Shown piece after piece: positions 1 to 50,800 of a stretch of 64,000 nucleotides of DNA. The stretch is taken from positions 14,818,001 through 14,882,000 of the forward strand of contig NW_027361825.1 of assembly GCF_039654945.1 (NCBI RefSeq), read 5' to 3'. This DNA is from Dendrobates tinctorius (Eukaryota). Within the stretch, counting starts at the first letter, position 1. Each line of letters begins with the position of its first letter. Position numbers and translations under genes: made by a program. The notes under the pieces are model-generated. The model had not been told where the DNA came from. It saw only the letters and a program-made list of their open reading frames with translations, and made no database searches.

Positions 1-3000
1 ACAGGGCCCCTCATAGTACGCTGGTGTGTTTGACGGCGAGTGGGTCCCCCCACCATCAGAGACACTGTGTTGTTCTATGAGGGGCCCTGTGCCAGTGCAG
101 TCCGCCATCAGTGGGCCCATCCACCTGTTCAGAGCAACGGCACTTGCCCGGGTGCGCCAGGTGTTGACCCCCGCCCTTGGGAGGGTGGGCAGTCCAGTTA
201 GGGAGGATTAAAAAATGGCATATGTTGATGTGTAGGCTGGACATTCAGCAGCTGTAAATGGCGGAATTGGGCAAGTCAGAGGAAGAGGAGAACAAAAGCA
301 AGGCAGTTTTCTGGCAACGTAGGTGTCATCAGGGGATGGTGGGACAAATTCCTTGGAAACCCATGCATGGTTCATTTTAATGAAGGTTAGATCATCAACA
401 TTTTGGGTTGACAGACGGGTCCTTTTTTCAGTCAGGATTGATCCAGCAGCACTGAAGACTCTTTCAGATAACACACTAGCAGCAGGGCAAGCGAGCTCCT
501 GTAAGGCATATTGTGCCAATTCCGGCCAGGTGTCCAGTTTAGAGGCCCAGTAGTCAAAGGGGAATGACCTGTGCGGGAGAACATCGATATGGGAGGAGAA
601 GTAGTTTGTAACCATAGTTGACAACTTCTGTCTCCTGTCATTTTTAATCGATGCAGTATTAGCAGTCGTGTGAGTGGTACTTGAGAAATCAGTCCACAAC
701 ATGGTCATGAAACCCGTTTCCAATGCCACTTCAGGTGTGTGGACCACGAACACCTCTTCCATTGTACCCACTACGGCTCGTGGGAGAAACAGCACCGCTG
801 CTGTGTGCTGGGAAAGCCTCAAACAAACGGTTTACCAAAGTTGCTTGTTTGTGAGACAATATTATCTCTAGGTTCTCCTGTGGTAAGATGTTGTGCAATT
901 TGCCTTTGTAGCATGGATTGAGGATGCTGGCCAGCCAGTAGTCATCATCCTTCATCATTTTGGCAATGTGGGGGTCCCTTTTTAGGATCCACAAGGCATA
1001 ATCGCACATGTGGGCCAATGTTCCAGGTGTTAATAATGCACTGCCACTGCTGGGTGGAGGAGCACTTTCTGGAAAATCCACATCCCTACAGTCACGCACA
1101 AACCCTGTACCTGACCTTGCAACGCCAACATTTTCTCTTGCCCCCTGAGAAGCATCCTCCTGCCCAAAATAATCATCCCCCTCATCCTCCTCCTCCTCCC
1201 TTTCCTCTTCATCCACCTCGTCCAGGACAGTTCCCTGACCAGACAATGGCTGACTGTCAGGATGGCCTCTCTCCTCCTCCTCCTGTTCCTCCTCCGCTGC
1301 AGATGCCTGTTCTTTAATGTGCATCAAACTTTGCATGAGCAGATGCATAAGGGGGATGCTCATGCTAATGATGACATCATCAGCGCTTACCAGCCGTGTG
1401 CATTCCTCAAAACACTGAAGGACTTTACAGTGGTCTTTCAGCTTTGACGACTGCACACCCGACAATTCCATGTCTGCCCTTAAACTGCCTGCCCATGTAT
1501 TCTCCCACAAATGCATTACAACCTGCCTTTGTTCGCACAGCCTCTCAACCATGTGCAGGGTGGAGCTCCATCTTGTTGCAAAGTCTATAATTAGGCGGTG
1601 CTTGGAGAGGTGGAGCAATAGCTGCAGCTTCTGAATACGAGTGGAGTGTATGGCCGAGCGATGGATGTGCGAGCACAGTCTTCGCACCTTATGGAGCAGG
1701 GATGTTAACTCCGGATAATTATCAAGGAAGCACTGCACCACCAGGTTCAAAGTGTGAGCCAGGCAAGGTATGTGTGTGAGTTTTGCAAGGCCTATGGCTA
1801 CCACAAAATTACGGCCGTTATCACTGACTACTTTGCCTGGCTCAAGATGTAGACTGCTCAGCCATGACTCAGTTAGTCGCTGCAAGTAGTCGGCCAGTAC
1901 CTCCGCGGTGTGTCTGTTGTCGCCCAAAGACATCATCTTTAACACAGCCTGCTGACGCTTACCACTAGCTGTTCGATAGTGGGACACCTCATGTGCAACA
2001 CTGACAGCTGAGGATGGAGTGCTCGTGCAACTGCTCTCTGTGGACGAGCTTTCGCTTATAGAGGAGGAGGCTCGAAAGCTTACAGGCAACTGTTTTCTAT
2101 ACCGTGGGCTAGGCAGCACTGTTCCACCGCCACTGTGCCCTGTGGAGCCTGCATCCACCACATTAACCCAGTATGCAGTGATGGACATGTAACGGCCCTG
2201 GCCATGCCTACTGGACCATGCATCTGTTGAGAGGTGCACCTTTCCACTCACTGATTGCTTGAGTGCATGGACAATGCGGTCTTTCACATGCAGGTGGAGG
2301 GCTGGGATGGCTTTTCGAGAAAAGAAGTGCCGACTGGGTAGGTCATATCGTGGGACAGCGTAGGCCATGAGGTCGCGGAAAGCTTCGCTTTCAACCAAAT
2401 GGTAGGGCATCATCTCTAATGAGATTAGTTTGGCAATGTAGGTGTTCAAACACAGTGTATGCGGATGAGAGGATAAGTACTTTCTTGTCCAACTCAGAGT
2501 GTCTGGTAGGGTGAGCTGTACTGGAGAGCTGCATATGGGGGAACTAGCGGTGGACCGGATGGACTGAGAGGGGGTTAGTGATGGTATTGGTGGTGATGGC
2601 CTAGATTCAGTGTTGTGTTGCAAAACCATTGTGATTCCCTGAGTGCTTTGGCCTTGCGACGACACCTCAACATTTAATGCTGGTGGTGTGCTGTATGGTG
2701 GCAGTGGTGTTACAGTGGGGGAAGTGATGGAGTGTTGCTGGCTACCTTCAGTTGGAGCAGGTGCACATGTGCTACCTGACGTTTTGTAGTCCGTCCACGC
2801 TTGCAAGTGCATGTTGGTTAAATGTCTAAGCATGCCACTGGTATTCAAATTTCTGAGTTGTTTACCTCGGCTAAAGGTTCTTCTGCACTTCTTACAGGTA
2901 ACCTTTGCTGTAGGATTTTGGACAAAGAAGTCCCACACTGCACTTTTCCTACTATGGTATACATTTTCTGGCCTTGCACTCTCTGCTAACTTGACCGTCT

Positions 3001-13703: not shown

Positions 13704-14636
13704 TTAAACAGATATATTACACCTGGATGTCCTCCTTCTCCTTAGAGCATTTTTTATGTCTTTGTTTTTCAAGCTGTAGATCAGTGGATTTAGCAAAGGG
13801 ACCACAACTGTGTTGATCAAAGTGTAAAGTTTTTTGTATTCTAGATTGCTGGGTATCATATATTGCATAACATTCATTGTATAGAGAAGGATGACAATAG
13901 TGAGGTGTGAGGAGCACGTGTAGAAGGCCTTAGATCTGCCTGTGGTGGTACGGATCTTCATGATTGCAATTATTATAAAAATATAGGGCACAAAAGTGAG
14001 AAGAAATGGGGAAATAGTAAAAAGAAGCCATCCTTCAATGAAGAATAATATTTCCAATACAGAGGTATCACTGCAAGTCATCTTCATTAGAAGGATGATG
14101 TCACAGAGGAAGTGGTTGACTTTAATGGAGGTATAACATGAGAAACCTGATAGTAGTAAAGTATGTGGACATATGAAAATAAATCCTAAGGTCCAGCAGA
14201 AAGAAGCCAATACAACACATGTTCTCTGGTTCATAATCAATTTGTACCTCAATGGAATACAAATGGCCACATAACGATCATAGCTCATGGCCGTCAGTAT
14301 GTACAGCTCATGAATTGTGAAGGATCCGGTCATGAAAGATTGTATCATGCACCCATGGAATGAAACCTTTTTATTCCCAGTCATGAAACTAGTGAAAATT
14401 CTATGTAACACGGAGGTGGTAAAAAAGACGTCAATGATGGACAGATTGGCCAAGAAGAAGTACATGGGAGTGTGGAGATGATGTTCTAAGCAGATCAGTA
14501 TGAGAATCATCATGTTTCCTCCAAAAACAATCAGATAGACAAATAGAACTACAACAAAGACCATAATCTGTAATTCTGAGGTGTCCGAGAATCCTTCCAG
14601 GATAAAATATTCAATGACGGTTTTATTCTTGTACAT
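13704..14636 (-). CDS. Olfactory receptor, intact single exon, 310 aa
   Basis: OR motifs FILEGFS, LHTPMYFFLANLS, MSYDRYVAICIPLRY, HFLCD, KAFYTCSSHL, PLLNPLIYSLKNKD; N-glycosylation site NKT near the N-terminus. Confidence 0.95.
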   Translation of the reverse strand: MYKNKTVIEYFILEGFSDTSELQIMVFVVVLFVYLIVFGGNMMILILICLEHHLHTPMYFFLANLSIIDVFFTTSVLHRIFTSFMTGNKKVSFHGCMIQSFMTGSFTIHELYILTAMSYDRYVAICIPLRYKLIMNQRTCVVLASFCWTLGFIFICPHTLLLSGFSCYTSIKVNHFLCDIILLMKMTCSDTSVLEILFFIEGWLLFTISPFLLTFVPYIFIIIAIMKIRTTTGRSKAFYTCSSHLTIVILLYTMNVMQYMIPSNLEYKKLYTLINTVVVPLLNPLIYSLKNKDIKNALRRRRTSRCNISV

Positions 14637-17595: not shown

Positions 17596-19200
17596 CAGTG
17601 GGGAAAAAAAGTATTTAGTCAGTCAGCAATAGTGCAAGTTCCACCACTTAAAAAGATGAGAGGCGTCTGTAATTTACATCATAGGTAGACCTCAACTATG
17701 GGAGACAAACTGAGAAAAAAAAATCCAGAAAATCACATTGTCTGTTTTTTTTTCATTTTATTTGCATATTATGGTGGAAAATAAGTATTTGGTCAGAAAC
17801 AAAATTTCATCTCAATACTTTGTGATATATCCTTTGTTGGCAATGACAGAGGTCAAACGTTTTCTGTAAGTCTTCACAAGGTTGCCACACACTGTTGTTG
17901 GTATGTTGGCCCATTCCTCCATGCAGATCTCCTCTAGAGCAGTGATGTTTTTGGCTTTTCGCTTGTCAACACGGACTTTCAACTCCCTCCAAAGGTTTTC
18001 TATAGGGTTGAGATCTGGAGACTGGCTAGGCCACTCCAGGACCTTGAAATGCTTCTTACGAAGCCACTCCTTCGTTGCCCTGGCCGTGTGCTTTGGATCA
18101 TTGTCATGTTGAAAGACCCAGCCACGTTTCATCTTCAATGCCCTTGCTGATGGAAGGAGGTTTGCACTCAAAATCTCACGATACATGGCCCCATTCATTC
18201 TTTCATGTACCCGGATCAGTCGTCCTGGCCCCTTTGCAGTGAAACAGCCCCAAAGCATGATGTTTCCACCACCATGCTTTACAGTAGGTATGGTGTTTGA
18301 TGGATGCAACTCAGTATTCTTTTTCCTCCAAACACGACAAGTTGTGTTTCTACCAAACAGTTCCAGTTTGGTTTCATCAGACCATAGGACATTCTCCCAA
18401 AACTCCTCTGGATCATCCAAATGCTCTCTAGCAAACGTCAGACGGGCCCGGACATGTACAGGCTTAAGCAGTGGGACACATCTGGCACTGCAGGATCTGA
18501 GTCCATGGTGGCGTAGTGTGTTACTTATGGTAGGCCTTGTTACATTGGTCCCAGCTCTCTGCAGTTCATTCACTAGGTCCCCCCGCGTGGTTCTGGGATT
18601 TTTGCTCACCGTTCTTGTGATCATTCTGACCCCACGGGGTGGGATTTTGCGTGGAGCACCAGATCGAGGGAGATTATCAGTGGTCTTGTATGTCTTCCAT
18701 TTTCTAATTATTGCTCCCACAGTTGATTTCTTCACTCCAAGCTGGTTGGCTATTGCAGATTCAGTCTTCCCAGCCTGGTGCAGGGCTACAATTTTGTTTC
18801 TGGTGTCCTTCGACAGCTCTTTGGTCTTCACCATAGTGGAGTTTGGAGTCAGACTGTTTGAGGGTGTGCACAGGTGTCTTTTTATACTGATAACAAGTTT
18901 AAACAGGTGCCATTACTACAGGTAATGAGTGGAGGAAAGAGGAGACTCTTAAAGAAGAAGTTACAGGTCTGTGAGAGCCAGAAATCTTGATTGCTTGTTT
19001 CTGACCAAATACTTATTTTCCACCAAAATATGCAAATAAAATGAAAAAAAACAGACAATGTGATTTTCTGGATTTTTTTTTCTCAGTTTGTCTCCCATAG
19101 TTGAGGTCTACCTATGATGTAAATTACAGACGCCTCTCATCTTTTTAAGTGGTGGAACTTGCACTATTGCTGACTGACTAAATACTTTTTTTCCCCACTG
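17596..19200 (-). mobile_element. Full-length Tc1 transposon
   Basis: ~210-bp terminal inverted repeats starting CAGTGGGGAAAAAAAGTATTTAGTC, TA flanks on both sides, 1605 bp long. Confidence 0.97.
17812..18834 (-). CDS. Tc1 DD34E transposase, intact, 340 aa
   Basis: N-terminal HTH region, GAPRK linker, WSDETK, FQHDND and SPDLNPIE catalytic motifs; no stops. Confidence 0.95.
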
Positions 19201-25059: not shown

Positions 25060-28000
25060 TAGTGTTGAGCATTCCGATACCGCAAGTATCGGGTATCGGC
25101 CGATACTTGCTGTATCGGAATTCCGATACCGACTTCCGATATTTTTTCAATATCGGAATTCGGCATCGGAATCAGAATTCAAAGTTGATTGACAGACTGA
25201 CGTCATCATGATGCGCGGTGTGTGCGCATCATGATGCGCCGTCATTTCGGGCCTTCCGGGGGGCTGTGCCGGCCTGCCGGGGGGCTGTGCCGGCCTGCCG
25301 GGGGGCTGTGTGGACTGCCCGGGGTCTGTACCGGCCTGCCGGGGGGCTGTGCCGGCCTGCCGGTGGTCTGTGCACCCTGTGGGGGTCTGTACCGGCCTGC
25401 CGGGGGGCTGTGCCGGCCTGCCGGTGGTCTGTGCACCCTGTGGGGGTCTGTACCGGCCTGCCGGGGGGCTGTGCCGGCCTGCCGGGGGCTGTGCTGATGT
25501 CCGGGGGTCTGTGCAAGCATCGTCCGATGGGACTACAAGTCCCATCGGGCGATGCCTGCTACCATGACAGTGATTGACACATTAGCCAATGATGGGACAG
25601 TAGTAGTCCCATCATCCGGCTAATGTGTTAAATGTTAAAAAAAAAAAAAAAAAATACTACATACATACTACATGCATGCTACATACATACTACATACTAC
25701 ATACATACTACATATATACTACATACATACTACATGCTACATACATACTACATGCATGCTACATACATACTACATGCATGCTACATACATACATGCTACA
25801 TACATACTACATGCATGCTACATACATACTACATGCTACATACATACTACATATATACCACATACATACATACTACATATATACTACATACATACTACAT
25901 ATATACTGCATACATACTACATACATGCTACATACATACTACATACATGCTACATACATGCTACATACATGCTACATACATGCTACATGCATGCTACATA
26001 CATACCACATACATACTACATACATACTACATACATACTACATGCTACATACATACCACATACATACTACATACATGCTACATACTACATACATACTACA
26101 TACATACTACATGCATGCTACATACATACTACATGCATGCTACATACATACTACATGCCACATACATACCACATACATACTACATACATACTACATACAT
26201 ACTACATGCTACATACATACTACATATATACTACATGCATGCTACATACATACTACATGCTACATACATACCACATACATACTACATACATGCTACATAT
26301 ATACTACATGCATGCTACATACATACTACATGCTACATACATACCACATACATACTACATACATGCTACATACATACTACATACATACTACATGCTACAT
26401 ACATACCACATATATACTACATACATACTACATACAATACATTCATACAATACATACATAGACATACAGTACATATAACATAGAGTAACATCCTTACCAA
26501 TACTTGTCACATTGTTCCCCGAAGCCATTGTCGTCTACGGAATAAATATTAACATAACAAACCACAAAAATACTCACCCACGATCCGAAGCAGTCCACGA
26601 GTGTGTCCCACGACGATCTTGGGTAGAGAACTGCAGCATCAGATGATGCTGCCGTTCTCTACTGGCTGCAGGAATCCAATGTAGGAAGGTAGGTATCCTT
26701 CCGCACTGTATTCCTCCGCCACTTAAAAAAAAAAAAGTCCCTAGTCTCACTTTATGCCATTGCTGCGTGGGAAATTCCCACACAGCAATGGCATAAAGTG
26801 AGACTAGGGACTTTTTTTTTTTTTTAAGTGGCGGAGGAATACAGTGCGGAAGGATACCTACCTTCCGTCATTGGATTCCTGCAGCCCGTAGAGAACGGCA
26901 GCAACAGCTGATGCTGCAGTTCTCTACCCAAGATCGTCATGGGACACACTCGTGGACTGCTTCGGATCGTGGGTGAGTATTTTTGTGGTTTGTTATGTTA
27001 ATATTTATTCCGGAAAAGACAATGGCTTCGGGGAACAATGTGACAAGTATTGGTAAGTATGTTACTCTATGTTATATGTACTGTATGTCTATGTATGTAT
27101 TGTATGAATGTATTGTATGTATGTAGTATATATGTGGTATGTATGTAGCATGTAGTATGTATGTAGTATGTATGTAGCATGCATGTAGCATGCAGTATGT
27201 ATGTAGCATGCATGTAGTATATATGTAGTATGTATGTGGTATGTATGTAGCATGTAGTATGTATGTAGCATGCATGTAGTATGTATGTAGCATGCATGTA
27301 GTATATATGTAGTATGTATGTAGCATGTAGTATGTAGCATGCATGTAGTATATATGTAGTATGTATGTAGCATGTAGTATGTATGTAGCATGCATGTAGT
27401 ATATATGTAGTATGTATGTAGCATGTAGTATGTATGTAGCATGTATGTAGCATGCATGTAGTATGTATGTAGTATGTATGTAGCATGTAGTATGTATGTA
27501 GCATGCATGTAGTATGTATGTAGCATGCATGTAGTATGTATGTAGCATGCATGTAGTATGTATATGGTATGTATGTAGCATGTAGTATGTATGTAGCATG
27601 CATGTAGTATATATGTGGTATGTATGTAGCATGCATGTAGCATGTATGTAGTATGTATGTAGTATATATGTAGTATGTATGTAGCATGTAGTATGTATGT
27701 AGCATGCATGTAGTATATATGTAGTATGTATGTAGCATGTAGTATGTATGTAGCATGCATGTAGTATATATGTAGTATGTAGCATGTAGTATGTATGTAG
27801 CATGCATGTAGTATATATGTAGTATGTAGCATGTAGTATGTATGTAGCATGCATGTAGTATATATGTGTTATGTATGTAGCATGTAGCATGCATGTAGTA
27901 TGTATGTAGTATATATGTGGTATGTATGTAGCATGCAGTATGTATGTAGCATGCATGTAGTATATATGTAGTATGTATGTTGCATGTAGTATTTATGTAG

Positions 28001-28649
28001 TATGAATGTAGCATGTATGTAGTATGTAGTATGAATGTAGCATGTATGTAGTATGCATGTTGTATGTATGTAGCATGTAATTTTTTTTTTTTTTTTTTAC
28101 ATTTAACACATTAGCCGGATGATGGGACTACTACTGTCCCATCATTGGCTAATGTGTCAATCACTGTCATGGTAGCAGGCATCGCCCGATGGGACTTGTA
28201 GTCCCATCGGACGATGCCTGCACAGACCACCGGCAGGCCGGCACAGCCCCCCGGCAGGCCGGCACAGCCCCCCGGCAGGCCGGCACAGCCCCCCGGAGCC
28301 TGCACAGCCCCCCGGCAGGCCGGCACAGCCCCCCGGAGCCTGCACAGCCCCCCGGCAGGCCGGCACAGCCCCCCGGAGCCTGCACAGACCACCGGCAGGC
28401 CGGCACAGCCCCCCGGCAGGCCGGCACAGCCCCCCGGCAGGCCGGCACAGCCCCCCGAAAGGCCCGTACAGACCCCAGAGAGGCTGTACAAGGGCAGGAA
28501 AGGGTTTTTCTTATTCCGATACCGGAAGTCCCATAGACTTGAATGGGACTTCCGGTATCGGAATCGGCGATACCGATACTTTTTTTAAAGATCGGCCGAT
28601 ACCATCCGATACGATACTTTGAAGTATCGGACGGTATCGCTCAACTCTA
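25060..28649. mobile_element. Non-autonomous hAT foldback element (3.6-kb near-palindrome)
   Basis: TIRs TAGTGTTGAGC / GCTCAACTCTA and a perfect 8-bp TSD GCCAAAAC (25052-25059, 28650-28657). Arms mirror around about 26774, each carrying a GC-rich ~19-bp minisatellite and a TACA/TACATGC microsatellite. Confidence 0.93.
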
Positions 28650-36890: not shown

Positions 36891-37832
36891 TTATGCTATT
36901 ACTTTACAAAATTTAAGCCTTCGCTTTATTGCTAATGTCATATCTTTATTTTTGAAGCTGTAGATCAATGGATTTACTATGGGGATAAAGACAGTATTAA
37001 ACATAGAAAACAATTTACTTGATTCTGTCGATCTTTTTGATTTTGGAGTAAAGTATTGCAAGAAGATAATCAAATAGAGAAGGATGACAACTGTGAGGTG
37101 GGAAGAACAGGTGTAGAAGGCTTTACGTCTTCCGGAGCTGGCGCGGATTTTGAGTATGGAGATGATAATGAAAATGTAAGGTGTGAAAGTAAGGAGGAAA
37201 GGCAACAGACCAAAAAGAGAAATCCCTACTGTGAAAATGACAATCTGTAGGGTGGCAATGTCATCACAAGTAATTTCCATGAGAGGGACAAGGTCACAGA
37301 AGAAGTGATTGATCTCATGAGACCTGTAACAAGAAAAGTTCAAAACCAAAGTAGTAGGTGGAAGGACTAAGAAGAAGCCAGAAATCCAGGAGATTATGGA
37401 CAACCATATACAAACTTTTTGGGTCATGACTGTGTGATATAGTAATGGATTATAGACGGCTATATATCGATCATAACTCATCACTGCTAGTATTGCAAAT
37501 TCATCAAATGTAAAAGATGCAAAAAAGTGCATTTGTACCATGCAAGCGAGGTAAGAAACTGACTTGTCCCCGAGTATGAAATTAGCAAAGATCTTGTGGA
37601 GTGATACGGTCGAACAAGAGAGGTCCACCAGTGACAAGTTGGCTAGAAAGAAGTACATAGGAGTACGAAGTTGACGGTCAAAACAGGACACTGTGATAAT
37701 GGTCATGTTGCCTCCAAGAATGATGATGTAAATAAGAAGAACCAGAAGGAAGATTGGAAGCTGAAGTTCAGGAACACTTGAAATCCCATTAATAATGAAA
37801 TAGGTAACCATGGTTTGATTTGGTGGATTCAT
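36891..37832 (-). CDS. Olfactory receptor, intact single exon, 313 aa
   Basis: NQT site, LRTPMYFFLANLS, MSYDRYIAVYNPLLY, HFFCD, KAFYTCSSHL, PIVNPLIYSFKNKD. Confidence 0.95.
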   Translation of the reverse strand: MNPPNQTMVTYFIINGISSVPELQLPIFLLVLLIYIIILGGNMTIITVSCFDRQLRTPMYFFLANLSLVDLSCSTVSLHKIFANFILGDKSVSYLACMVQMHFFASFTFDEFAILAVMSYDRYIAVYNPLLYHTVMTQKVCIWLSIISWISGFFLVLPPTTLVLNFSCYRSHEINHFFCDLVPLMEITCDDIATLQIVIFTVGISLFGLLPFLLTFTPYIFIIISILKIRASSGRRKAFYTCSSHLTVVILLYLIIFLQYFTPKSKRSTESSKLFSMFNTVFIPIVNPLIYSFKNKDMTLAIKRRLKFCKVIA

Positions 37833-42269: not shown

Positions 42270-43065
42270 GAATAGCGTGTAAGCTCTTATGGTCAGTGTC
42301 ATCAACTCTCCCTCTCTCTTCTGGAAAGTGTAAGCTCTTATCAGCAGGGTCCTCTTTCCTGTAGAGTGTAAACTCCTATGTTCAGTTGGATCCACTCTCC
42401 TTTGTAGAGTGTAAGCTCTTATGGTCAGAGCGGTCCTCTCTTCCTATCCTGTAAAGTGTAAGCTCTTATAGTTAGCTTGGTCCTCTCTTCCTCTCCTGAA
42501 GAGTCTAATCTCTTATGGTCAGTGGTTTTCTTTCTCCTGTAAAGAGTAAACTCTTATGGTCAGCAGGGTCCTCTCTCTCTTCTGTAGAGTGTAAGTTCTT
42601 ATGGAGAGCAAGGTTCTTTCTCTCCTGTAGAGTTTAAGCTTTTATGGTCATTGGGTCCTCATTCTTTGCTGTAAAGTGTAAGATCTTATGGTCAGTGGGG
42701 TTCTCTCTCTCTCTCCTGTGCAGTGTAAGCTCTTATAGTCAGAGCGATCCTCTCTCTCTCCTGTAGAGTATAAGCTCTTATTGTCAGCGAGGTCTTCTCT
42801 CTTTCCTATAGAGTGTAAGCTCTAATGGTCAATGTTATCATCTCTCTCTTTCCTGTAGAGTGTAAGCTCTTGTGGTCAGTGGAGTCCTCTCTCTTTCTCT
42901 CCTGTAGAATGTAAGCTCTTATGGTTAGCAAGGTCCTCTCGCTTTCTCCTGTAAAGTATAAGCTCAGTAGGGTCCGCTCTCTCTGTAAAGTGTAAGCTGT
43001 TATGATCAGCAAGAACGTCTTTCTCTGTAAAGTGTAAGATCTTAGGGTCGGCGGGGTTCTCACTC
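42270..43065. repeat. ~40-bp tandem array
   Basis: Roughly 19 diverged copies of TAGAGTGTAAGCTCTTATGGTCAGCAGGGTCCTCTCTC. Confidence 0.9.
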
Positions 43066-43262
43066 TTTCTTCTCCCCATGTGTATTTTCTGAGCATTTAC
43101 AAGCTTTCCCACATCGAAATTGAGCAAATTTTTTTTCCGTAAATTACATTTATTGGGGAAAATTTGTTGAATTTGAATTTCAAAAGATCTGCTCATCTTG
43201 AATCACTATTGTATTGACCGGTAGAATAACATTCACATGTCTCTTTTCCTGTGTAGTAAGTG

Positions 43263-43731
43263 CAGTGGCGTAGCAACTGTTTGTGGCGCCCAGGGCGGTC
43301 GAAAATTTGCCGCCCCTTTGGTCGTTGATAATCCGGAAGCATCCGAAGAGCCCACACTACACTCAAAGATCTAATTTTTAGTCTGCTACTAACTCTGCTG
43401 TTATTATGTCTACATTTCAAGACTTTCATCTTCTTGCAGTTCTCTATATATATATGTATGTATTAGCTTGATGATAATGGATGAAGACCTAATGGCTTTT
43501 TTAATAATAATTTTTAATAATGTGACAGAAAAAAAAACAGAAAGTACAAATTCTTTTCGAAACTTGGGAAAAGTTCAGCGGTGTTCGCCGGGCCGGAAGT
43601 GCGCTGCCACGCCCACGGTGGAGACACACAGATAGGTCCTGCTGGCTGCTGCACTGTGCCTCCGCGCTTCTCCCACAGAGGAGAGGAATTGCTGCTGCTA
43701 CCACGCCGCCCCCACACACGTGCCGCCTGGG
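43263..43731 (-). mobile_element. hAT-type MITE, truncated copy (inverted relative to 46028-46538)
   Basis: Begins with TIR CAGTGGCGTAGC; near-identical reverse complement of about 46058-46538; the inner TIR is missing. Confidence 0.85.
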
Positions 43732-43829
43732 AATACATTTTATTTTCTAAGGTCTGTGACAACCACGGGCGGAGCACACGTGTGCGCACACGGCCTCCAC
43801 CACAGTATATCAGCAGTGCATGGGTTACT

Positions 43830-44070
43830 TGTGGTCACGTGATACCAGTTCCACTTATTCCCTCCCACTTTCCCAGAGCGGTTTCCATAGGCTTGACGTA
43901 ACGCCTAACTCCGGTCACATGTCTCCTGTTTACGTTCATGCCTAGCTACTACAACTCCCAGAACACCCCGCGCCTTTAGCTTGTGGGATTTGTAGTTCTA
44001 GGTGCCATCAGGACAATAGACAACGGCTTCCAAAAGAACTACATGTCCCAGGATCCCGGGCGGGGATGAC
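43830..44070 (+). promoter_or_regulatory. Housekeeping-type promoter and putative exon 1 of the STK25-like gene
   Basis: Three ACTACAnnTCCCA (ZNF143/THAP11-type) motifs at 43948, 43984-43996 (reverse) and 44038. TGACGTAA CRE-like sites at 43894 and 44067, CACGTG E-box, GGGCGGGG GC box, and consensus donor GTAAGT at 44071. Confidence 0.7.
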
Positions 44071-44455
44071 GTAAGTACGTGTGTGGTATCAGGGAGGACT
44101 GTTTTGCTCTCTGTATAGAGCAGGCCAGCTATTAGGACCCTGTGTATTGCTGTGCTGAGTGGCTATGGCTCAGTGCTATGGGTTGCCATAGATTAGTATA
44201 GGAGGGAGCTGTGGTGTACTGGGCTCCATACATCCCAGCAGTAGGGACATTTTATCTCTGCACATTGCAGCCACTGCCTATGACTATTGGTAGCAGAACA
44301 GTCTCACAGCTGCTGCTTCTTGTCAGTGTGTTGCATTCAGGGCTGTGCAGATTATAGAGGGGGCGAGCGATGTGGGGCAAGTTGTGTGCGCTGTGCCGTC
44401 ACCCCCAGTCTATGGGTCACTGATCTGTCACTGAGCGGAATCAGATTGCTCCAGA

Positions 44456-44485
44456 ATGGCGCACCTACGGGACTTCCCATCACAG
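44456..44485 (+). CDS. STK25: STK25-like kinase, first coding exon portion (MAHLRDFPSQ)
   Basis: 10 codons resembling the STK25 N-terminus MAHLRGFANQ, ending at phase-0 donor CAG|GTAATT; likely acceptor TTCAG| at 44340. Confidence 0.85.
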
Positions 44486-45079
44486 GTAATTCTCACTCTT
44501 AATGCAGTACACCGCTATTGGGTCGCCCACCAAGAAGCCGCGCTAACTCCGCCAGCCTCCAGATCTGATAGGTAACGTGGCTTCTTCACGGGTCTGTTTT
44601 CGTTGCATCGTGTCTGTTGTGCACTAGTCTCATGAGCTGCACCTGCACTAACCGGCTCCAGAGTTGCGCACTCAGCACTGATCCACGTACAGCAGTACAG
44701 AATGAGCCTCAGGGATCAGCTGAAAGAATGTCGCCTTCAGGCAGTCGTTATTTTTCCCATGCAGATTGGAAAGTGAAGACCGTTTGTGGTTGATTTCAGA
44801 AAAACAAAACTGATTGTGATTTAATATCAAAGTGACTGCTGTCTGTACACAGAATCCACCACTGGTTATTGCTACACGAGGAGGACTGTGACCGGTATAA
44901 CTGCCCGGCGCAGCCTGCATTACGCCACCACTTGCCCCGGGCTTTGTATACAGAATTCAGTAAAGGAAATGGGACGGGGGGACGGAGGGAAGCAGCTGCT
45001 GTCATGTGACGACTCATCTAGAAAGTAAATGGCAAAGGCACTAGGTATTGTGGCTTTCTGATTATTTCTTCCTCTGTAG

Positions 45080-45310
45080 GGATCGAGAATGGACCCAGAA
45101 CGCCTCTTCACCAAGCTGGAGCGCATTGGGAGGGGATCATTTGGAGAAGTGTACAAAGGTATAGAGAATCGCAGCAAAGAAGTGGTGGCCATCAAGATCA
45201 TAGACCTGGAAGAGGCAGAAGATGAGATTGAGGACATTCAACAAGAGATCACTGTTCTGAGCCAGTGTGACAGTCCTTATATCAATCGCTATTATGGCTC
45301 CTACCTGAAG
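45080..45310 (+). CDS. STK25: STK25-like (GCKIII/YSK1) kinase, second coding exon (N-lobe)
   Basis: 231-nt phase 0/0 exon bounded by CTCTGTAG| and |GTAACG. Encodes GSRMDPERLFTKLERIGRGSFGEVYKG...KEVVAIKIIDLEEAEDEIEDIQQEITVLSQCDSPYINRYYGSYLK; VYKG, KEVVA and PYI.RY favour STK25 over STK24/26. Confidence 0.92.
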
Positions 45311-45374
45311 GTAACGTCCTAAACCTTTATTAATGCGCTCTGTACTAGGAAACTGAGTCTCGATGGGAGACTTA

Positions 45375-45780
45375 GGCCAGCGTCACACTACCGTGGAATA
45401 CGGACAAGTGCTATGCGAGAAAACATTGCATAGCACTCATTCTAGTGTTATTCTTTGGGGCAGATCATATCTGCGATTTTCTCATGCTGAATCGGTCGCT
45501 GCATGCTGCGATTGGCAATGAGACTTGGCCGAGTCTTGGCTCACTTGCATCTATGGGTGCGAATGACACAACGCACATCACTCGGATATAATCTGAGTGC
45601 GGTGCGATGTACGGTGACGCCGGCAATGGAGGAGATGGAGAAACTACTTTCTCCACCTCCTCCGCAGCTGTGCTCTGATCAGCTCTGTGTGAGAGGATGG
45701 GAGTGCAGTAGCAGGACACTCGACTCACACTCGCAGCAGAGCTATCGCATCGGATGCCATACGCTAGTGTGACCCCAGCC
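45375..45780. mobile_element. PIF/Harbinger-type MITE
   Basis: TIRs GGCCAGCGTCACACTA / TAGTGTGACCCCAGCC flanked by TTA. Confidence 0.7.
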
Positions 45781-46027
45781 TTAAAGGGATTGTTCAGCCC
45801 AAAGTGTTGCAAAGCACAAAGAAATTAAACTTTCTTATCCTCAAAGTGTCCTGATTTCTATGTCAGTTCAGGGAGCTTCACTTCCATTTTCGTTTTCAAC
45901 CAGTAGAGCGCTCCCTGTCTATCTCTGCGCAACACGTTGGCTAATATTATGAGCACCCAGATTTCTTAAGACGAGCTGATGGCTGCTATCAAAGCAACCT
46001 GGGCTTCCATAACACCTCAGCAGTGCC

Positions 46028-46538
46028 CAGTGGCGTAGCGTGGGGGGGCGGTCCGCCCCAGGTGGCACGTGTGTGGGGGCGGCGCGGCAGCAGCAGCAAT
46101 TCCTCTCCTCTGTGGGAGAAGCGCGGAGGCACAGTGCAGCAGCAGCAGCCAGCAGGACCTGTCTGTGTATCTCCACCGTGGGCGTGGCAGCGCACTTCCG
46201 GCCCGGCGAACACCGCTGAACTTTACCCAAGTTTCGAAAATAATTTGTACTTTGTTTTTTTTTCTGTCACATTATTAAAAATTATTATTAAAAAGCCATT
46301 AGGTCTTCATCCAGCATCATCAAGCTAATACATACATATATATACTGTATATAGAGAGAACTGCAAGAAGATGAAAGTCTTGATGTGTAGACATAATAAC
46401 AGCAGAGTTAGTAGCAGACTAAAAATTAGATCTTTGAGTGTAGTGTGGGCTCTTCGGATGCTTCCGGATTATCAATGACCAAAGGGGCGGCAAATTTTTC
46501 GACCGCCCCGGGCGCCACAAATAGTTGCTACTCCACTG
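46028..46538 (+). mobile_element. hAT-type MITE, complete copy
   Basis: TIRs CAGTGGCGTAGC / GCTACTCCACTG; abuts a Tc1 3' fragment (about 45965-46027); no 8-bp TSD. Confidence 0.85.
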
Positions 46539-47142
46539 ACTTTATGTAACATTGATCATAATTATTCTCTTAGGAATTGCTATTAATACAATATTTAATT
46601 TACCGTACATTAATATTTCATCCCCAGCCTGAAGATGTTTTGCTCATCTAGATAGGTACAATTTGGCTCCTTCATGTGACACGTATTAGCACTGCCAAAT
46701 ACTTTTAGTTTCCTTTTCATTAGAGTCACTCACATCCTTCTGCTGTTCATATGTCATTGGGTAGACAATACTTTATTTGTACATCATAATCTGGGCGTGA
46801 TCGGCGCAAGAAAAAACTAATGAAGGAGACTTTAAATAGACATAAAGACTAAACTGCCAATGTATGCATCATCCATAAATACCTTTTGCATCATAACTAG
46901 ATAAACAAGCTACCTACTAACTGAATAAAAGCTGGGTTATTTCTATAGTGACAGTAATAGAAGCACAGCAGGTGATACAACACTTCATCAGGTAAGTGCA
47001 TGTCTGCTGATAATATGTTGATATAGTGGTGGAGAACATTACTGCTGGAGAAATGGGCAAAAACCAGCAAAAAAAAATCTACTTCAAAATCAATTCAAAT
47101 CTACAAATATTATTAATTAACGGCAGGCACAGACGCGATTAT

Positions 47143-47825
47143 CTCCCATCCTGGAATATGTCCCTTATCCTGGCCCCATCCTGGTATATACATCCCCCAT
47201 TGTGGTATATGTCCCCTATCCTGGCCCAATCCTGGTATATACATCCCCCATTGTGGTATATGTCCCCTATCCTGGCCCAATCCAGTTATATATATCCCCC
47301 ATCCTGGTATACATCCTGGTATATACATCCCCCATCCTGGTATACATATCCCCCATCCTGGTATATGTCCCTTATCCTGAACCCATCCTGGTAAATATAT
47401 CCCCCATCCTGCTACATATATCCCCCATCTTGGTATATATACCCCCTATCCTGGTATATATATATCCCCCATCTTTGTATATACAGTATATATTCCCCAT
47501 CCTGGTATATGTCCCTTATCCTGACCCCATCATGGTATATATATCCCCCATCTTTGTATATTATTATTATTGCTTATTATTATTATGCATTTATATAGCG
47601 CCATTTATTCCATGGCACTTTACATGTCAAAAGGGGAATAATAGACAAGTGTAATATATGCAAGAATAATAAACAAGTGTAAGACAAGGGACACACAAGT
47701 ACATAAGGAGAGGGGACCCTGCCCGCGAGGTCTCACAGTCTACAGGGGTATATACAGTATATATTCCCCATCCTGGTATATGTCCCTTATTCTGACCCCA
47801 TCCTGTTATATATATCCCCCATCCT
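47143..47825. repeat. ~21-bp minisatellite with an inserted L2-type 3' fragment (about 47560-47745)
   Basis: CCCCATCCTGGTATATAT units, interrupted by (TAT)n-ATTTATATAGCGCC...GACCCTGCCCGCGAGG, which resembles the L2 tail at 53120-53285. Confidence 0.75.
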
Positions 47826-50800
47826 ATATGTTCATTGGATTTATGCCAAATGTTTACAATTTTATTTTAATTGCTTGTCCAAATACATGAAACAATAAAT
47901 TAGACCTGTTTCACTTCCTCCCCCCTTTGCAAGAGTCATGATTTTTTTATTCTTCCATCCACATCACTGTATAATTTTTTTTGTTTTTCTTTTGAGGTTT
48001 GAGTTGTAGTTTTGAATGACATCATTTAATCAATTGATAGACTGGAAAAGGGCAAATTGATTAAAATAATTCCAAGTGTTGTGAAATTGCACAAAAACCA
48101 CAATTTCACTAATTCATTGTGCAGTGAAAATTAACCTGATAATATACCACAGATCAAAGAAATGACAGAGATACCTAACTTGTATAGAATTTTTTTTATT
48201 TAAGTGGTGAAAAAAATATAGAAATTTTGAAAAAAAAATCCACAATTTTTTAAGACCTGTGACGTTTTCATTTTTACATCGGTGGAGATGTGAGGATTTT
48301 TTTGCATGGGCAGTTTATGTTTTTATTGATACCATTTTGAGGTTGATGCACCTTTTTGATCGCTTCATAATGCATTATTTTGCGGTGCTGTTAAACCTGA
48401 AAAAACACAATATTAGCATTTTGATTTTTTATGTGGTTAATCAATAATTTATTTTCATATATCAGACTTACTGACACTGCGATGCTACAAATGAAATATT
48501 CTACTGAAGAGGTTCAAATGGAGAACTGTTAAAATGAAGGAACGCCAAAGAATATATAAAATATAACTTTTAATCAAAATCAATTAAAAAGGACAAACAA
48601 CGACCAACAGACATAGACACCACACTTAAAAGTGCATTCTGAGTTCTCCCAGTGATAAGCGACCAAAACTGAGCACTTGCCTACCAGCAGAGGTTGGCAC
48701 CTTAAATGATACTGCATGCAATAGGCGGCCCAGCTCCTCAGTGGCTGTCCCACTCTGCCCTGGAGCACCCTATAAATTGGTCATGGAAAAATGACCAGAA
48801 TGACTGGGTAACATGTGGAGGTATATGGTGTTGGTCAATTAATGGGAGAAAAATAGTAGAAAAGAACGGCACTCACCGGGTAGTATAGTCAAGGCTTTAT
48901 TGTAAAAGCATATCAGCGGGAGAACGGGTGCAAAAAGGGAATTAGACCTACCGGTAATTCTGTTTCCTGTAGTCCCTCAGGACAGCACCATGGAGGACGT
49001 CCTTCCTTGCCCTATAGTGGGACAGGATCAGAGAGAGGTTAAAAGGCCCCTCCCACCTCCACCCTCCAGCGTTTTTTCAAAGTACCACCGTGGATGGATG
49101 GAAATGGTCTAAACACGCCCTTACAAACGCGTCTGTAAGACCCTTTAGCGGCTCCATCCCCATCTCGAGCCACGATGACCTGATGGATGAACAATCTGCC
49201 GATCGATTCCATGCAAGCCTAAAGACAAACATAAGGGAGGGAACTAAGGGTGCTGTCCTGAGGGACTACAGGAAACAGAATTACCGGTAGGTCTAATTCC
49301 CTTTTTCCCTTACGTCCCTCCGGACAGCACCATGGAGAATACCAAAGCAAAGGTCTCAGGGTGGGTACAGAAGCCCCCAGATCAAAGTTCTAGGTAAAAA
49401 CCAGTCTAGATCTAGACATTATCTATAAGATGAGAGGAAATCTAGATATCGAAAGGGATCTACAAAGGTAATCACCGTAGTGAGTGTCTGATATATGTCT
49501 ATAATGGCCAATTTCAGTATGAATGTGGCAAACAAGATTTGCAGTGGAACAACCTGTTGCACCCCAATACCACTAATAAACTGCAGTGAATTACAGTTAT
49601 TGTGATAGATACTTATGAACACCGCAGTCACAGAAATAGGATTAAAACCTTATTGCCCAGCAAAAGGTATGGTGATAACTACAGCCATAATACAAAGAGG
49701 ACTGTACAGACCGTTAATTCGCTGTATGTGCTTATAATACAGGATAGTTCCTTCGTCGGTCCTCCTGGGCTCGGCTTAAACCTTGGCTAGAGACCACCTT
49801 ACCATACTACAAGGAAACCTGCAGGCCAGAGACCATGCTCCGCTGGAAGATCAGAGCAATAACAGTACATGGAAAATAGCGGAGTATTGAGACGTATGTA
49901 CCCTACTCATCCAGGAGATCATGTGTATTCTGAATCCTTTACATGTCCAAACCTCAAGAAAGGGTTGGCTATTATTTAAGACTAAGGAAATACTCCATCT
50001 GGCAGGTAACTAGTCCTGCCACTACCAACATTGGCTTTTCATTAGAAGCATTGAAAGGGAAATGTGGATCCTCACGCCTGTTTTACTGATGTTAGACACT
50101 GGAGTCTGGACTTTGGAACTGAGGAGAGTAAGTGTGTGCTTCTATACAAGTCATTAGCCCAGACACTGTAAATGTGTCAACTTATTCATATGTTATATCC
50201 TAAAAGGCAATCTTCTTAGAGATATTTATACCACTGACTGCTATGGTGCGAGGAACCACACTCTATAACTAGAGGGAAGTAGGTTTCCTCCCATCGCAGA
50301 GGGGATTGACTACTGCGAGGCAGATGGGCTATGGGTTCTCGACTGCAAGAGTCATGGATACCGCTTCTTTACGTTAGGAGCCCTGACTCCCGTAAGAGCA
50401 GCGAGTATGGGATCCTCTGCCACCTGACGCAGGGCTGCTGAAACGCCACCAGGTACAAAAAGTAGTGATGCCACCCCTGGTAAACATAATACAACTGATT
50501 TATAGGACAAGAATCTGCCTAATGGGTCTCTATCAAGGAAACCAGTCCGACTGCTCTATGTGGAGTCGGGAAGAATTGTTTCCTCCCACCTTATGGGATT
50601 TTCTGCACCCAGACTATGTCCACTTAAAGGATGAACCCCAAAGACGTATGTCTCCCTTTAAAAGTTAACTATGAGAGGGACCTGCCTTTAGCCCTGAAGA
50701 CAGTAACTCACTTGAGGGTTCTGTTCCAAATAGAAGAAATGTTAAGTTACTAGGCCAATTCAAGCATAACTGTTCGTCTGGCTAAGTCCAGTTGCCAACA

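Follow-up and report, generated by a model that had tools for sequence, protein, structure and literature searches.

The window analyzed here is a 64,000-nucleotide stretch of the Dendrobates tinctorius genome (contig NW_027361825.1, positions 14,818,001 to 14,882,000, forward strand), and all positions below refer to it. Within the window, the 3.3-kb block 43263-46538 carries the promoter and the first two exons of stk25, the gene for serine/threonine kinase 25, enclosed by two inverted copies of one miniature inverted-repeat transposable element (MITE). We consider it probable, if by no means certain, that this block is a transposon-associated, dispersed partial duplicate of the stk25 5′ end and not the start of a working gene, and that it arose by a Pack-type capture through break repair and then spread. 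Contigs of four public runs were mapped onto 43075-47120, and the results on contigs hold among the contig matches listed.

A repeat search, with blastn pieces joined, identified the inverted pair that bounds the block: the left arm L (43263-43731, plus strand) and the right arm R (46028-46538, minus strand). Their alignment contains 450 matches, 16 substitutions and 5 indels, which amounts to 96.6% identity over the aligned bases (93% with gaps counted). R is a full 511-bp copy. Its inner terminus (labeled B, 46028-46039) reads CAGTGGCGTAGC starting from 46028, and its outer terminus (A, 46527-46538) is the reverse complement, CAGTGGAGTAGC, running up to 46538 with one mismatch (11/12 positions matching). 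L begins with the outer A terminus CAGTGGCGTAGC at 43263-43274 and is short by 29 bp at its inner B end, the terminal repeat included. The B ends of the two arms thus face each other, and the A ends, which are identical, point outward. The near-identical inverted pair, the enclosure of the promoter and both coding exons, and the missing inner end of the left copy had all been described in the first-pass annotation of this DNA, and all three descriptions hold. With at most one mismatch allowed, the 12-mer CAGTGGCGTAGC occurs three times in the 64 kb, always at the ends of L or R (0.19 occurrences expected). Neither blastn nor a fuzzy search for degenerate ends revealed any further copy of the MITE family in the window. 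The loose ends of other family copies, seen in the contigs of the public runs, break exactly at 43262/3 and at 46027/8, the latter being the inner boundary of R and backed by 12 contigs with diverse flanks. Because other copies diverge exactly at these points, they are the true termini of the family. A literature search with the terminal repeat string CAGTGGCGTAGC matched no paper.

Assemblers can be misled by inverted repeats, and a repeat of 470 bp might in principle have produced the whole arrangement. Such an artefact is extremely improbable here. An independent short-read contig of run X1 (record 8) crosses the outer junction of R (46502-47120) with 0 differences, contigs in the interior of the block (records 3 and 5) likewise match with 0 differences, and the substitutions and indels that separate the arms show that neither is a collapsed copy.

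The 2,296 bp between the arms consist of two mutually unrelated parts, 2.24 kb of stk25 and a 59-bp scrap of a Tc1-like transposase. The stk25 part includes the upstream region, exon 1, intron 1, exon 2 and a portion of intron 2, all on the plus strand. The upstream, or promoter, piece (43732-44116) has a GC content of 0.51 and an observed/expected CpG ratio of 0.73. Exon 1 (44117-44486) is transcribed from at least 44117; its coding part, 44457-44486, specifies MAHLRDFPSQ and is followed by a GT donor. Exon 2 (45080-45310) supplies 77 N-lobe codons of the kinase, among them those of the glycine loop IGRGSFGEV, and matches the Pfam Pkinase family at 2e-14. The GT donors and AG acceptors of the two exons are intact, including the exon 2 donor AAG|GTAACG, and read-through at this donor adds VTS before a stop. 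Exon 1, exon 2 and this three-codon read-through together make up the 90-residue protein P0121 annotated by NCBI. Searched as annotated, that is, as the NCBI model and not as exons joined independently, P0121 aligns over residues 1-89 to the STK25 structures 2xik, 7z4v and 4nzw at 5e-45. The alignment starts at residue 1, and the STK25 structures outrank those of STK24 (7e-39) and MST4. An exact look-up of the 77-residue exon 2 reading frame returned no record. None of the kinase motifs HRD, DFG and APE was found in the six frames of the 64 kb, so that the glycine loop of exon 2 is the sole kinase motif.

The cassette is not unique in the genome. A word search returned two NCBI proteins named 'serine/threonine-protein kinase 25-like [Dendrobates tinctorius]', both of 90 residues and encoded on different contigs. 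P0121, on a 42.8-Mb contig, corresponds to the present locus and has a 313-residue olfactory receptor gene upstream at the same distance as in the window. P0009 marks a second locus, on a contig of 29.4 Mb; 10 kb downstream of it lies a gene with a Ribosomal_L19 domain. The two proteins differ at 4 of the 90 residues, conserved positions (Y>C, C>F) included, and the gene of P0009 spans 882 bp versus 867 bp for P0121. At conserved kinase positions P0009 shows the changes GEVYKG>GEVCKG, SQCD>SQFD and SYLK>SYLN. Judging from the sequence, these changes would fit relaxed constraint on a stub, though one still annotated as a gene.

The public contigs point to further copies. In organism A contig depth is 15-28 in the cassette interior versus 8-9 in the right flank, a ratio of ~2-3 that is not itself a copy number, as the tool warns. 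Records 2/3 and 4/5 are paired contig versions of one place each, and three versions cover 43853. We read this as more than one copy of the cassette in organism A, probably three. In organism B, a close relative, the flank is 96-98% identical to the window, and the contigs of the cassette show variants that belong to another copy. One of these (X5 record 16, 652 nt, low depth) matches the block down to 43730 and then continues 296 nt further left. Because of its low depth this extension is unlikely to be the high-copy MITE; its sequence is probably the upstream region of the parental stk25. The point at which L is truncated therefore lies within 1-3 nt of the end of homology between cassette copies. 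A second left junction was observed in organism A, where a contig of single-copy depth joins MITE-type sequence (46124), followed by AGCGCA, to cargo nucleotide 43729. Two cassettes joined head to tail could account for it, as could another copy whose left arm is truncated by 64 bp more.

Organism E, ~88-92% identical, provides the comparison with a more distant relative. One of its contigs spans intron 1, exon 2 and intron 2 up to 45962 and then runs 551 nt further without a match to the present locus, and a different contig, ending near 46547, carries the right-flank ortholog. Judging by the contig ends in organisms B, A and E, homology among the copies, or with the parent, has its left limit where the inner end of L is cut off and its right limit no further along than the Tc1 scrap. 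The outcome that the first-pass annotation had set against its own idea, a single-copy cassette collinear with its flanks in relatives, is thus not what we found: there are two annotated loci, a two- to threefold depth and separate contigs in organism E. As regards Pack-type elements, a host gene fragment lies between transposon ends, with a parent elsewhere that we infer from contigs alone. The cargo is multi-copy, and MITE sequence adjoins the same cargo nucleotide in one other copy.

One of the runs, X6, behaves like RNA, as a spliced contig joins 44486 to 45080 across GT..AG. X6 does not cover intron 1 or the promoter (RNA-type contigs are absent from the promoter piece, with depth 0 over 43750-44019) and continues beyond the exon 2 donor to ~46010. 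No X6 contig was seen on 46585-47120, and there is no sign in X6 of a transcript heading to the APOBEC-like exon downstream. Exon 2 of the present copy is identical to the expressed contig. Because the 5′ untranslated region of the spliced contig differs from that of the present copy by 14 substitutions and 17 gap positions, this contig derives from another copy of the cassette. At least one stk25 cassette appears to be transcribed with read-through past exon 2, which fits the NCBI stub models.

These data bear on the idea that the block is the true 5′ end of stk25, followed by a very long intron 2, and that the other locus is the copy. In its favor, poison frogs have large introns (PMC11152451), the present copy has retained its promoter, its reading frame and both splice donors intact, and its exon 2 is identical to the expressed contig. 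Nevertheless, we regard this idea as very improbable. There is no further kinase exon in the 18.7 kb downstream, the 5′ untranslated region of the RNA-type contig comes from another copy, intron 2 of organism E does not run into the present flank, and the NCBI gene model is itself a 90-residue read-through product.

The preferred explanation, capture of an stk25 fragment followed by its dispersal, has to account for three joints of unrelated DNA: 43731/2, between the MITE interior and stk25 upstream sequence; 45968/9, between intron 2 and the interior of a Tc1 element; and 46538/9, between the MITE terminus and unique DNA, with no duplication. The last low-copy piece of intron 2 (45784-45968, plus strand) has an X1 depth of 18.8, and the stk25 contig of organism E matches it up to 45962. 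It is directly followed by the Tc1-like scrap (45969-46027, plus strand), which reads DELMAAIKATWASITPQQC, has a depth of ~190,000 and shows loose ends at both 45969 and 46027. Together with the family continuation from these loose ends, it reads KMRDTRPNNADELMAAIKATWASITPQQCHRLIASMPRR and aligns with the C-terminal end of the Tc1 transposase encoded in the window itself; other genomic copies extend the scrap on both sides as transposase C-terminus. On the left, the scrap is therefore cut inside the transposase gene; on the right, R breaks it off, and none of it reappears beyond 46538, as the first-pass annotation had already noticed.

As far as the sequence can tell, 43731/2 and 45968/9 look like break-repair joints and not like insertion joints, and because neither inner joint has the character of an insertion, break repair would be the likeliest origin of the arrangement. 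We propose that one of the MITEs was broken at its inner end through the action of transposase. The broken inner end of L would have been resected and then filled with DNA copied from the stk25 locus, in the manner of a Pack-type capture. The resulting unit, or at least its cargo, would then have reached at least two or three loci. Because both outer junctions sit exactly on the termini of the family, transposase action at these junctions is suggested as well, and the unit may have moved through its outer MITE ends. A later adjacent deletion or a non-canonical insertion would explain why there is no 8-bp duplication around it.

The kinship of the arms is relevant to whether they came together by chance. 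At positions 43408, 43413 and 43419 both L and R read G, C and A, where every family contig in the four runs reads T, A and T. Because three rare variants are common to both arms, L and R are sister copies of a minor subfamily and not random members of the family. The depth of the family in contigs of organisms A and B is about a thousandfold the single-copy level. With ~10^3 copies in an assembly of 6.3 Gb (PMC11152451), we estimate that chance alone would give fewer than one pair within 3 kb in the whole genome.

The arms could be two independent, ordinary MITE insertions on either side of a cassette whose duplication had an unrelated cause; deletions would later have erased the inner end of L and the target-site duplications. 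Local hopping is typical of hAT elements, the superfamily to which the MITE would belong, and this counts in favor of independent insertions. So does the abundance of hAT-class elements, which make up 3.9% of the D. tinctorius genome in ~265,000 annotated pieces (PMC11152451). Against this stand the low number of close pairs expected, the three shared rare variants, the coincidence within 1-3 nt of the L truncation with the end of homology between copies, and the inner and outer flanks of R, which are not contiguous. On balance, we find independent insertions doubtful, and quite unlikely as a full account.

As for the MITE family itself, its form differs among organisms. In organism E only the terminal ~80 bp are abundant, and a mini-form is present that keeps both termini and skips 46054-46477 (422 bp). 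The 511-bp form with the present interior seems limited to organisms A and B.

Target-site tests were made for R, for the pair, and for other types of duplication. R has no matching 8-bp target duplication, as its inner flank is GCAGTGCC and its outer flank ACTTTATG. For the pair, the 8 bp outside L (43255-43262, AGTAAGTG) do not match the 8 bp outside R (46539-46546, ACTTTATG), the agreement being 4/8. The absence of an 8-bp duplication for both the right copy and the composite had been reported in the first-pass annotation, and our comparison gives the same result. TA or TTAA duplications, of the Tc1 or the piggyBac/Kolobok type, are also absent at the MITE flanks. Both ends of R and the outer end of L fit short terminal inverted repeats of the YARNG/CAG.. 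type (CAGTGGCGTAGC), which is a weak criterion alone. Tc1-type ends likewise begin with CAGTG. We regard the 511-bp MITE as putatively hAT-like.

A hAT transposase remnant occurs elsewhere in the window (208-2938, minus strand). It has a 735-residue frame with a zf-BED finger and an overlapping 204-residue frame that holds the hAT C-terminal dimerisation domain, and is thus frameshifted. A fuzzy search of the window found no CAGTGGCGTAGC terminus near the remnant, whose own termini were likewise not found.

How far the block resembles a macro-transposon, a unit bounded by two transposable elements, depends on the feature considered. R is a boundary element that has no duplication of its own and has flanks of different origin, the Tc1 scrap inside and unrelated, unique DNA outside. 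Matching 8-bp sequences at both outer flanks were not found at the locus. Nor is the cargo collinear with its donor up to natural insertion junctions of both elements, because the joint of L with the cargo is a 29-bp truncation and the cargo end is joined to a Tc1-internal point at 45968/9. In the first-pass annotation the features of the block were taken as scars of a rearrangement by which a 5′ cassette of stk25 might have been moved or duplicated. A moved or duplicated cassette agrees with the two loci, the lack of collinearity in organism E and the sister arms. Canonical macro-transposition into the present site, on the other hand, is not demonstrated and fails the target-duplication test.

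Several of these points weigh against capture and dispersal by the MITE pair. In addition to the mismatched outer flanks of the pair and the warning attached to contig depths, the block has a repeat as its left flank and unique DNA as its right flank, and a simple insertion into uninterrupted DNA is thus not apparent. The other copies of the cassette may lack these arms or any duplication. Macro-transposition of Ac/Ds takes one 5′ and one 3′ end, and two identical A ends may be invalid as a transposase substrate. At the present site there may have been a later adjacent deletion, a non-canonical insertion or recombination between MITEs.

The last of these could by itself have produced the block, through ectopic recombination or gene conversion between dispersed MITEs or through a templated insertion at a break, the MITEs serving only as homology or as fragile sites and transposase playing no part in the move. 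The absent target duplication, the unlike flanks (repeat on the left, unique on the right) and the ample homology supplied by about a thousand family copies all agree with such an event. However, both outer junctions lie on the exact terminal nucleotide of the family. Homologous exchange predicts joints inside MITEs with native flanks, whereas R lacks a duplication of its own; the two arms, moreover, are sisters. Recombination is therefore an unlikely explanation in our view, albeit one to be taken seriously.

The cargo also contains a PIF/Harbinger-like MITE (45376-45783) within intron 2 of stk25, with the ends GGCCAGCGTCACAC and GTGTGACCCCAGCC and a TTA next to each of them. Organisms A and B have this element; the organism E contig lacks it cleanly and skips 45340-45779. 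Loose ends occur at 45783, and the family is very abundant in all three species. Because it is absent from the organism E contig, it is an ordinary insertion, unrelated to the arms, and serves as an internal control for the contig method.

Among known systems, the closest likeness is to the maize White Cap (Wc) locus, where a macro-transposon is bounded by two hAT elements, Tam3L (bioRxiv 10.1101/082677). One composite, Tam3Lc, has two 'left' termini with two unrelated fragments between them, and the boundary element Tam3La is intact, lacks its own duplication and has non-contiguous flanks (bioRxiv 10.1101/082677). The frog block similarly has two like termini facing outward, a gene-flank fragment and a transposon fragment sandwiched between them, and an intact boundary element without its own duplication and with non-contiguous flanks. 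Both may be read as abortive or alternative hAT transposition combined with break repair. The differences are that the Wc macro-transposon has a matching 8-bp outer duplication, while the frog locus has none; that the maize elements are 4.5 kb long, the frog MITEs 0.5 kb; and that the maize cargo consists of whole genes over tens of kb, compared with a 2.2-kb promoter-plus-exons fragment in a vertebrate. In the Composite Insertions of Ac/Ds (PMC4270019, PMC3744419), transposon termini also flank duplicated host DNA with an internal non-homologous joint. In those insertions, however, the host DNA comes from the natural flanks of the elements and 8-bp duplications occur, whereas the frog stk25 piece joins a truncated MITE and a Tc1 scrap and no duplication is seen.

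Pack-MULE, Pack-hAT and Pack-CACTA elements (PMC8903248, PMC5861414) and the animal transduplication Turmoil-1 (PMC2572040) share with the frog block a non-autonomous DNA element in which a host gene fragment lies between long inverted ends. Pack-type elements, reported mainly in plants (PMC8903248, PMC5861414), resemble it also in having several copies and possible transcription. They differ in that each 'long terminal repeat' of the frog block is a whole MITE, and in that its other copies may have other termini. As in the bacterial composite transposons Tn5 and Tn10, inverted copies of one small element bracket a cargo, with outer ends that are active in the bacterial case; the enzyme families are unrelated, the frog locus has no duplication, and its mobility is putative. 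A Helitron has reportedly captured the NUBPL promoter and first exon in vesper bats. That capture (PMC4224331) is like the present one in that a vertebrate promoter and 5′ exon are carried by a DNA transposon, and unlike it in its rolling-circle mechanism, its thousands of copies and the lack of an inverted MITE pair. The D. tinctorius genome paper (PMC11152451) makes no mention of stk25 or of such captures.

Capture and dispersal of gene fragments by cut-and-paste transposons are well documented in plants and seldom in vertebrates. In the frog the captured piece comprises a complete promoter, a start codon and two splice donors, and it is annotated as a gene at two loci. The locus displays, in unusually legible form, the types of scars that maize geneticists ascribe to abortive or alternative hAT transposition, namely like ends that face outward, an inner end cut short, unrelated fragments enclosed between the elements and the lack of a duplication. 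If the preferred explanation is right, the 90-residue 'STK25-like' gene models in the assembly would be transposon-borne stubs and not kinases. A bolder version would make the MITE pair a still-mobile vertebrate trap for promoters and exons, a macro-transposon carrying a live stk25 promoter with its start codon and two splice donors. We consider this improbable. If true, such a mobile trap could drive, or fuse with, downstream genes (the APOBEC-like exon is ~10 kb away) and so give rise to chimeric genes in poison frogs.

The block lies downstream of two olfactory receptor genes (13704-14636 and 36891-37832). Its left flank (43075-43209) is a mid-copy repeat, and its right flank (46585-47120) is single-copy in three species. 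By blastn, neither flank has a second copy in the window, and the same holds for the promoter, the exons, the PIF-like MITE and the Tc1 scrap. Further to the left is a tandem array of a ~47-bp satellite (42270-43073, ~15 units). The 190 bp between this array and L belong to the mid-copy repeat, a common variant of which has a 60-bp internal deletion. To the right of the block, 47123-47834 is a tandem array of the ~51-bp CCCCATCCTGGTATATA type. Elsewhere in the window, an uninterrupted 340-residue frame (17812-18834, minus strand) encodes a Tc1/Sleeping-Beauty-type transposase with HTH_SB, HTH_Tnp_Tc3_2 and DDE_3 domains and belongs to a different Tc1 family from the scrap at 45969-46027. Long overlapping frames are present at 25632-26483 (plus strand) and 27067-28014 (minus strand); their hexapeptide-repeat matches are sub-threshold only, and they probably reflect repetitive DNA and not genes.

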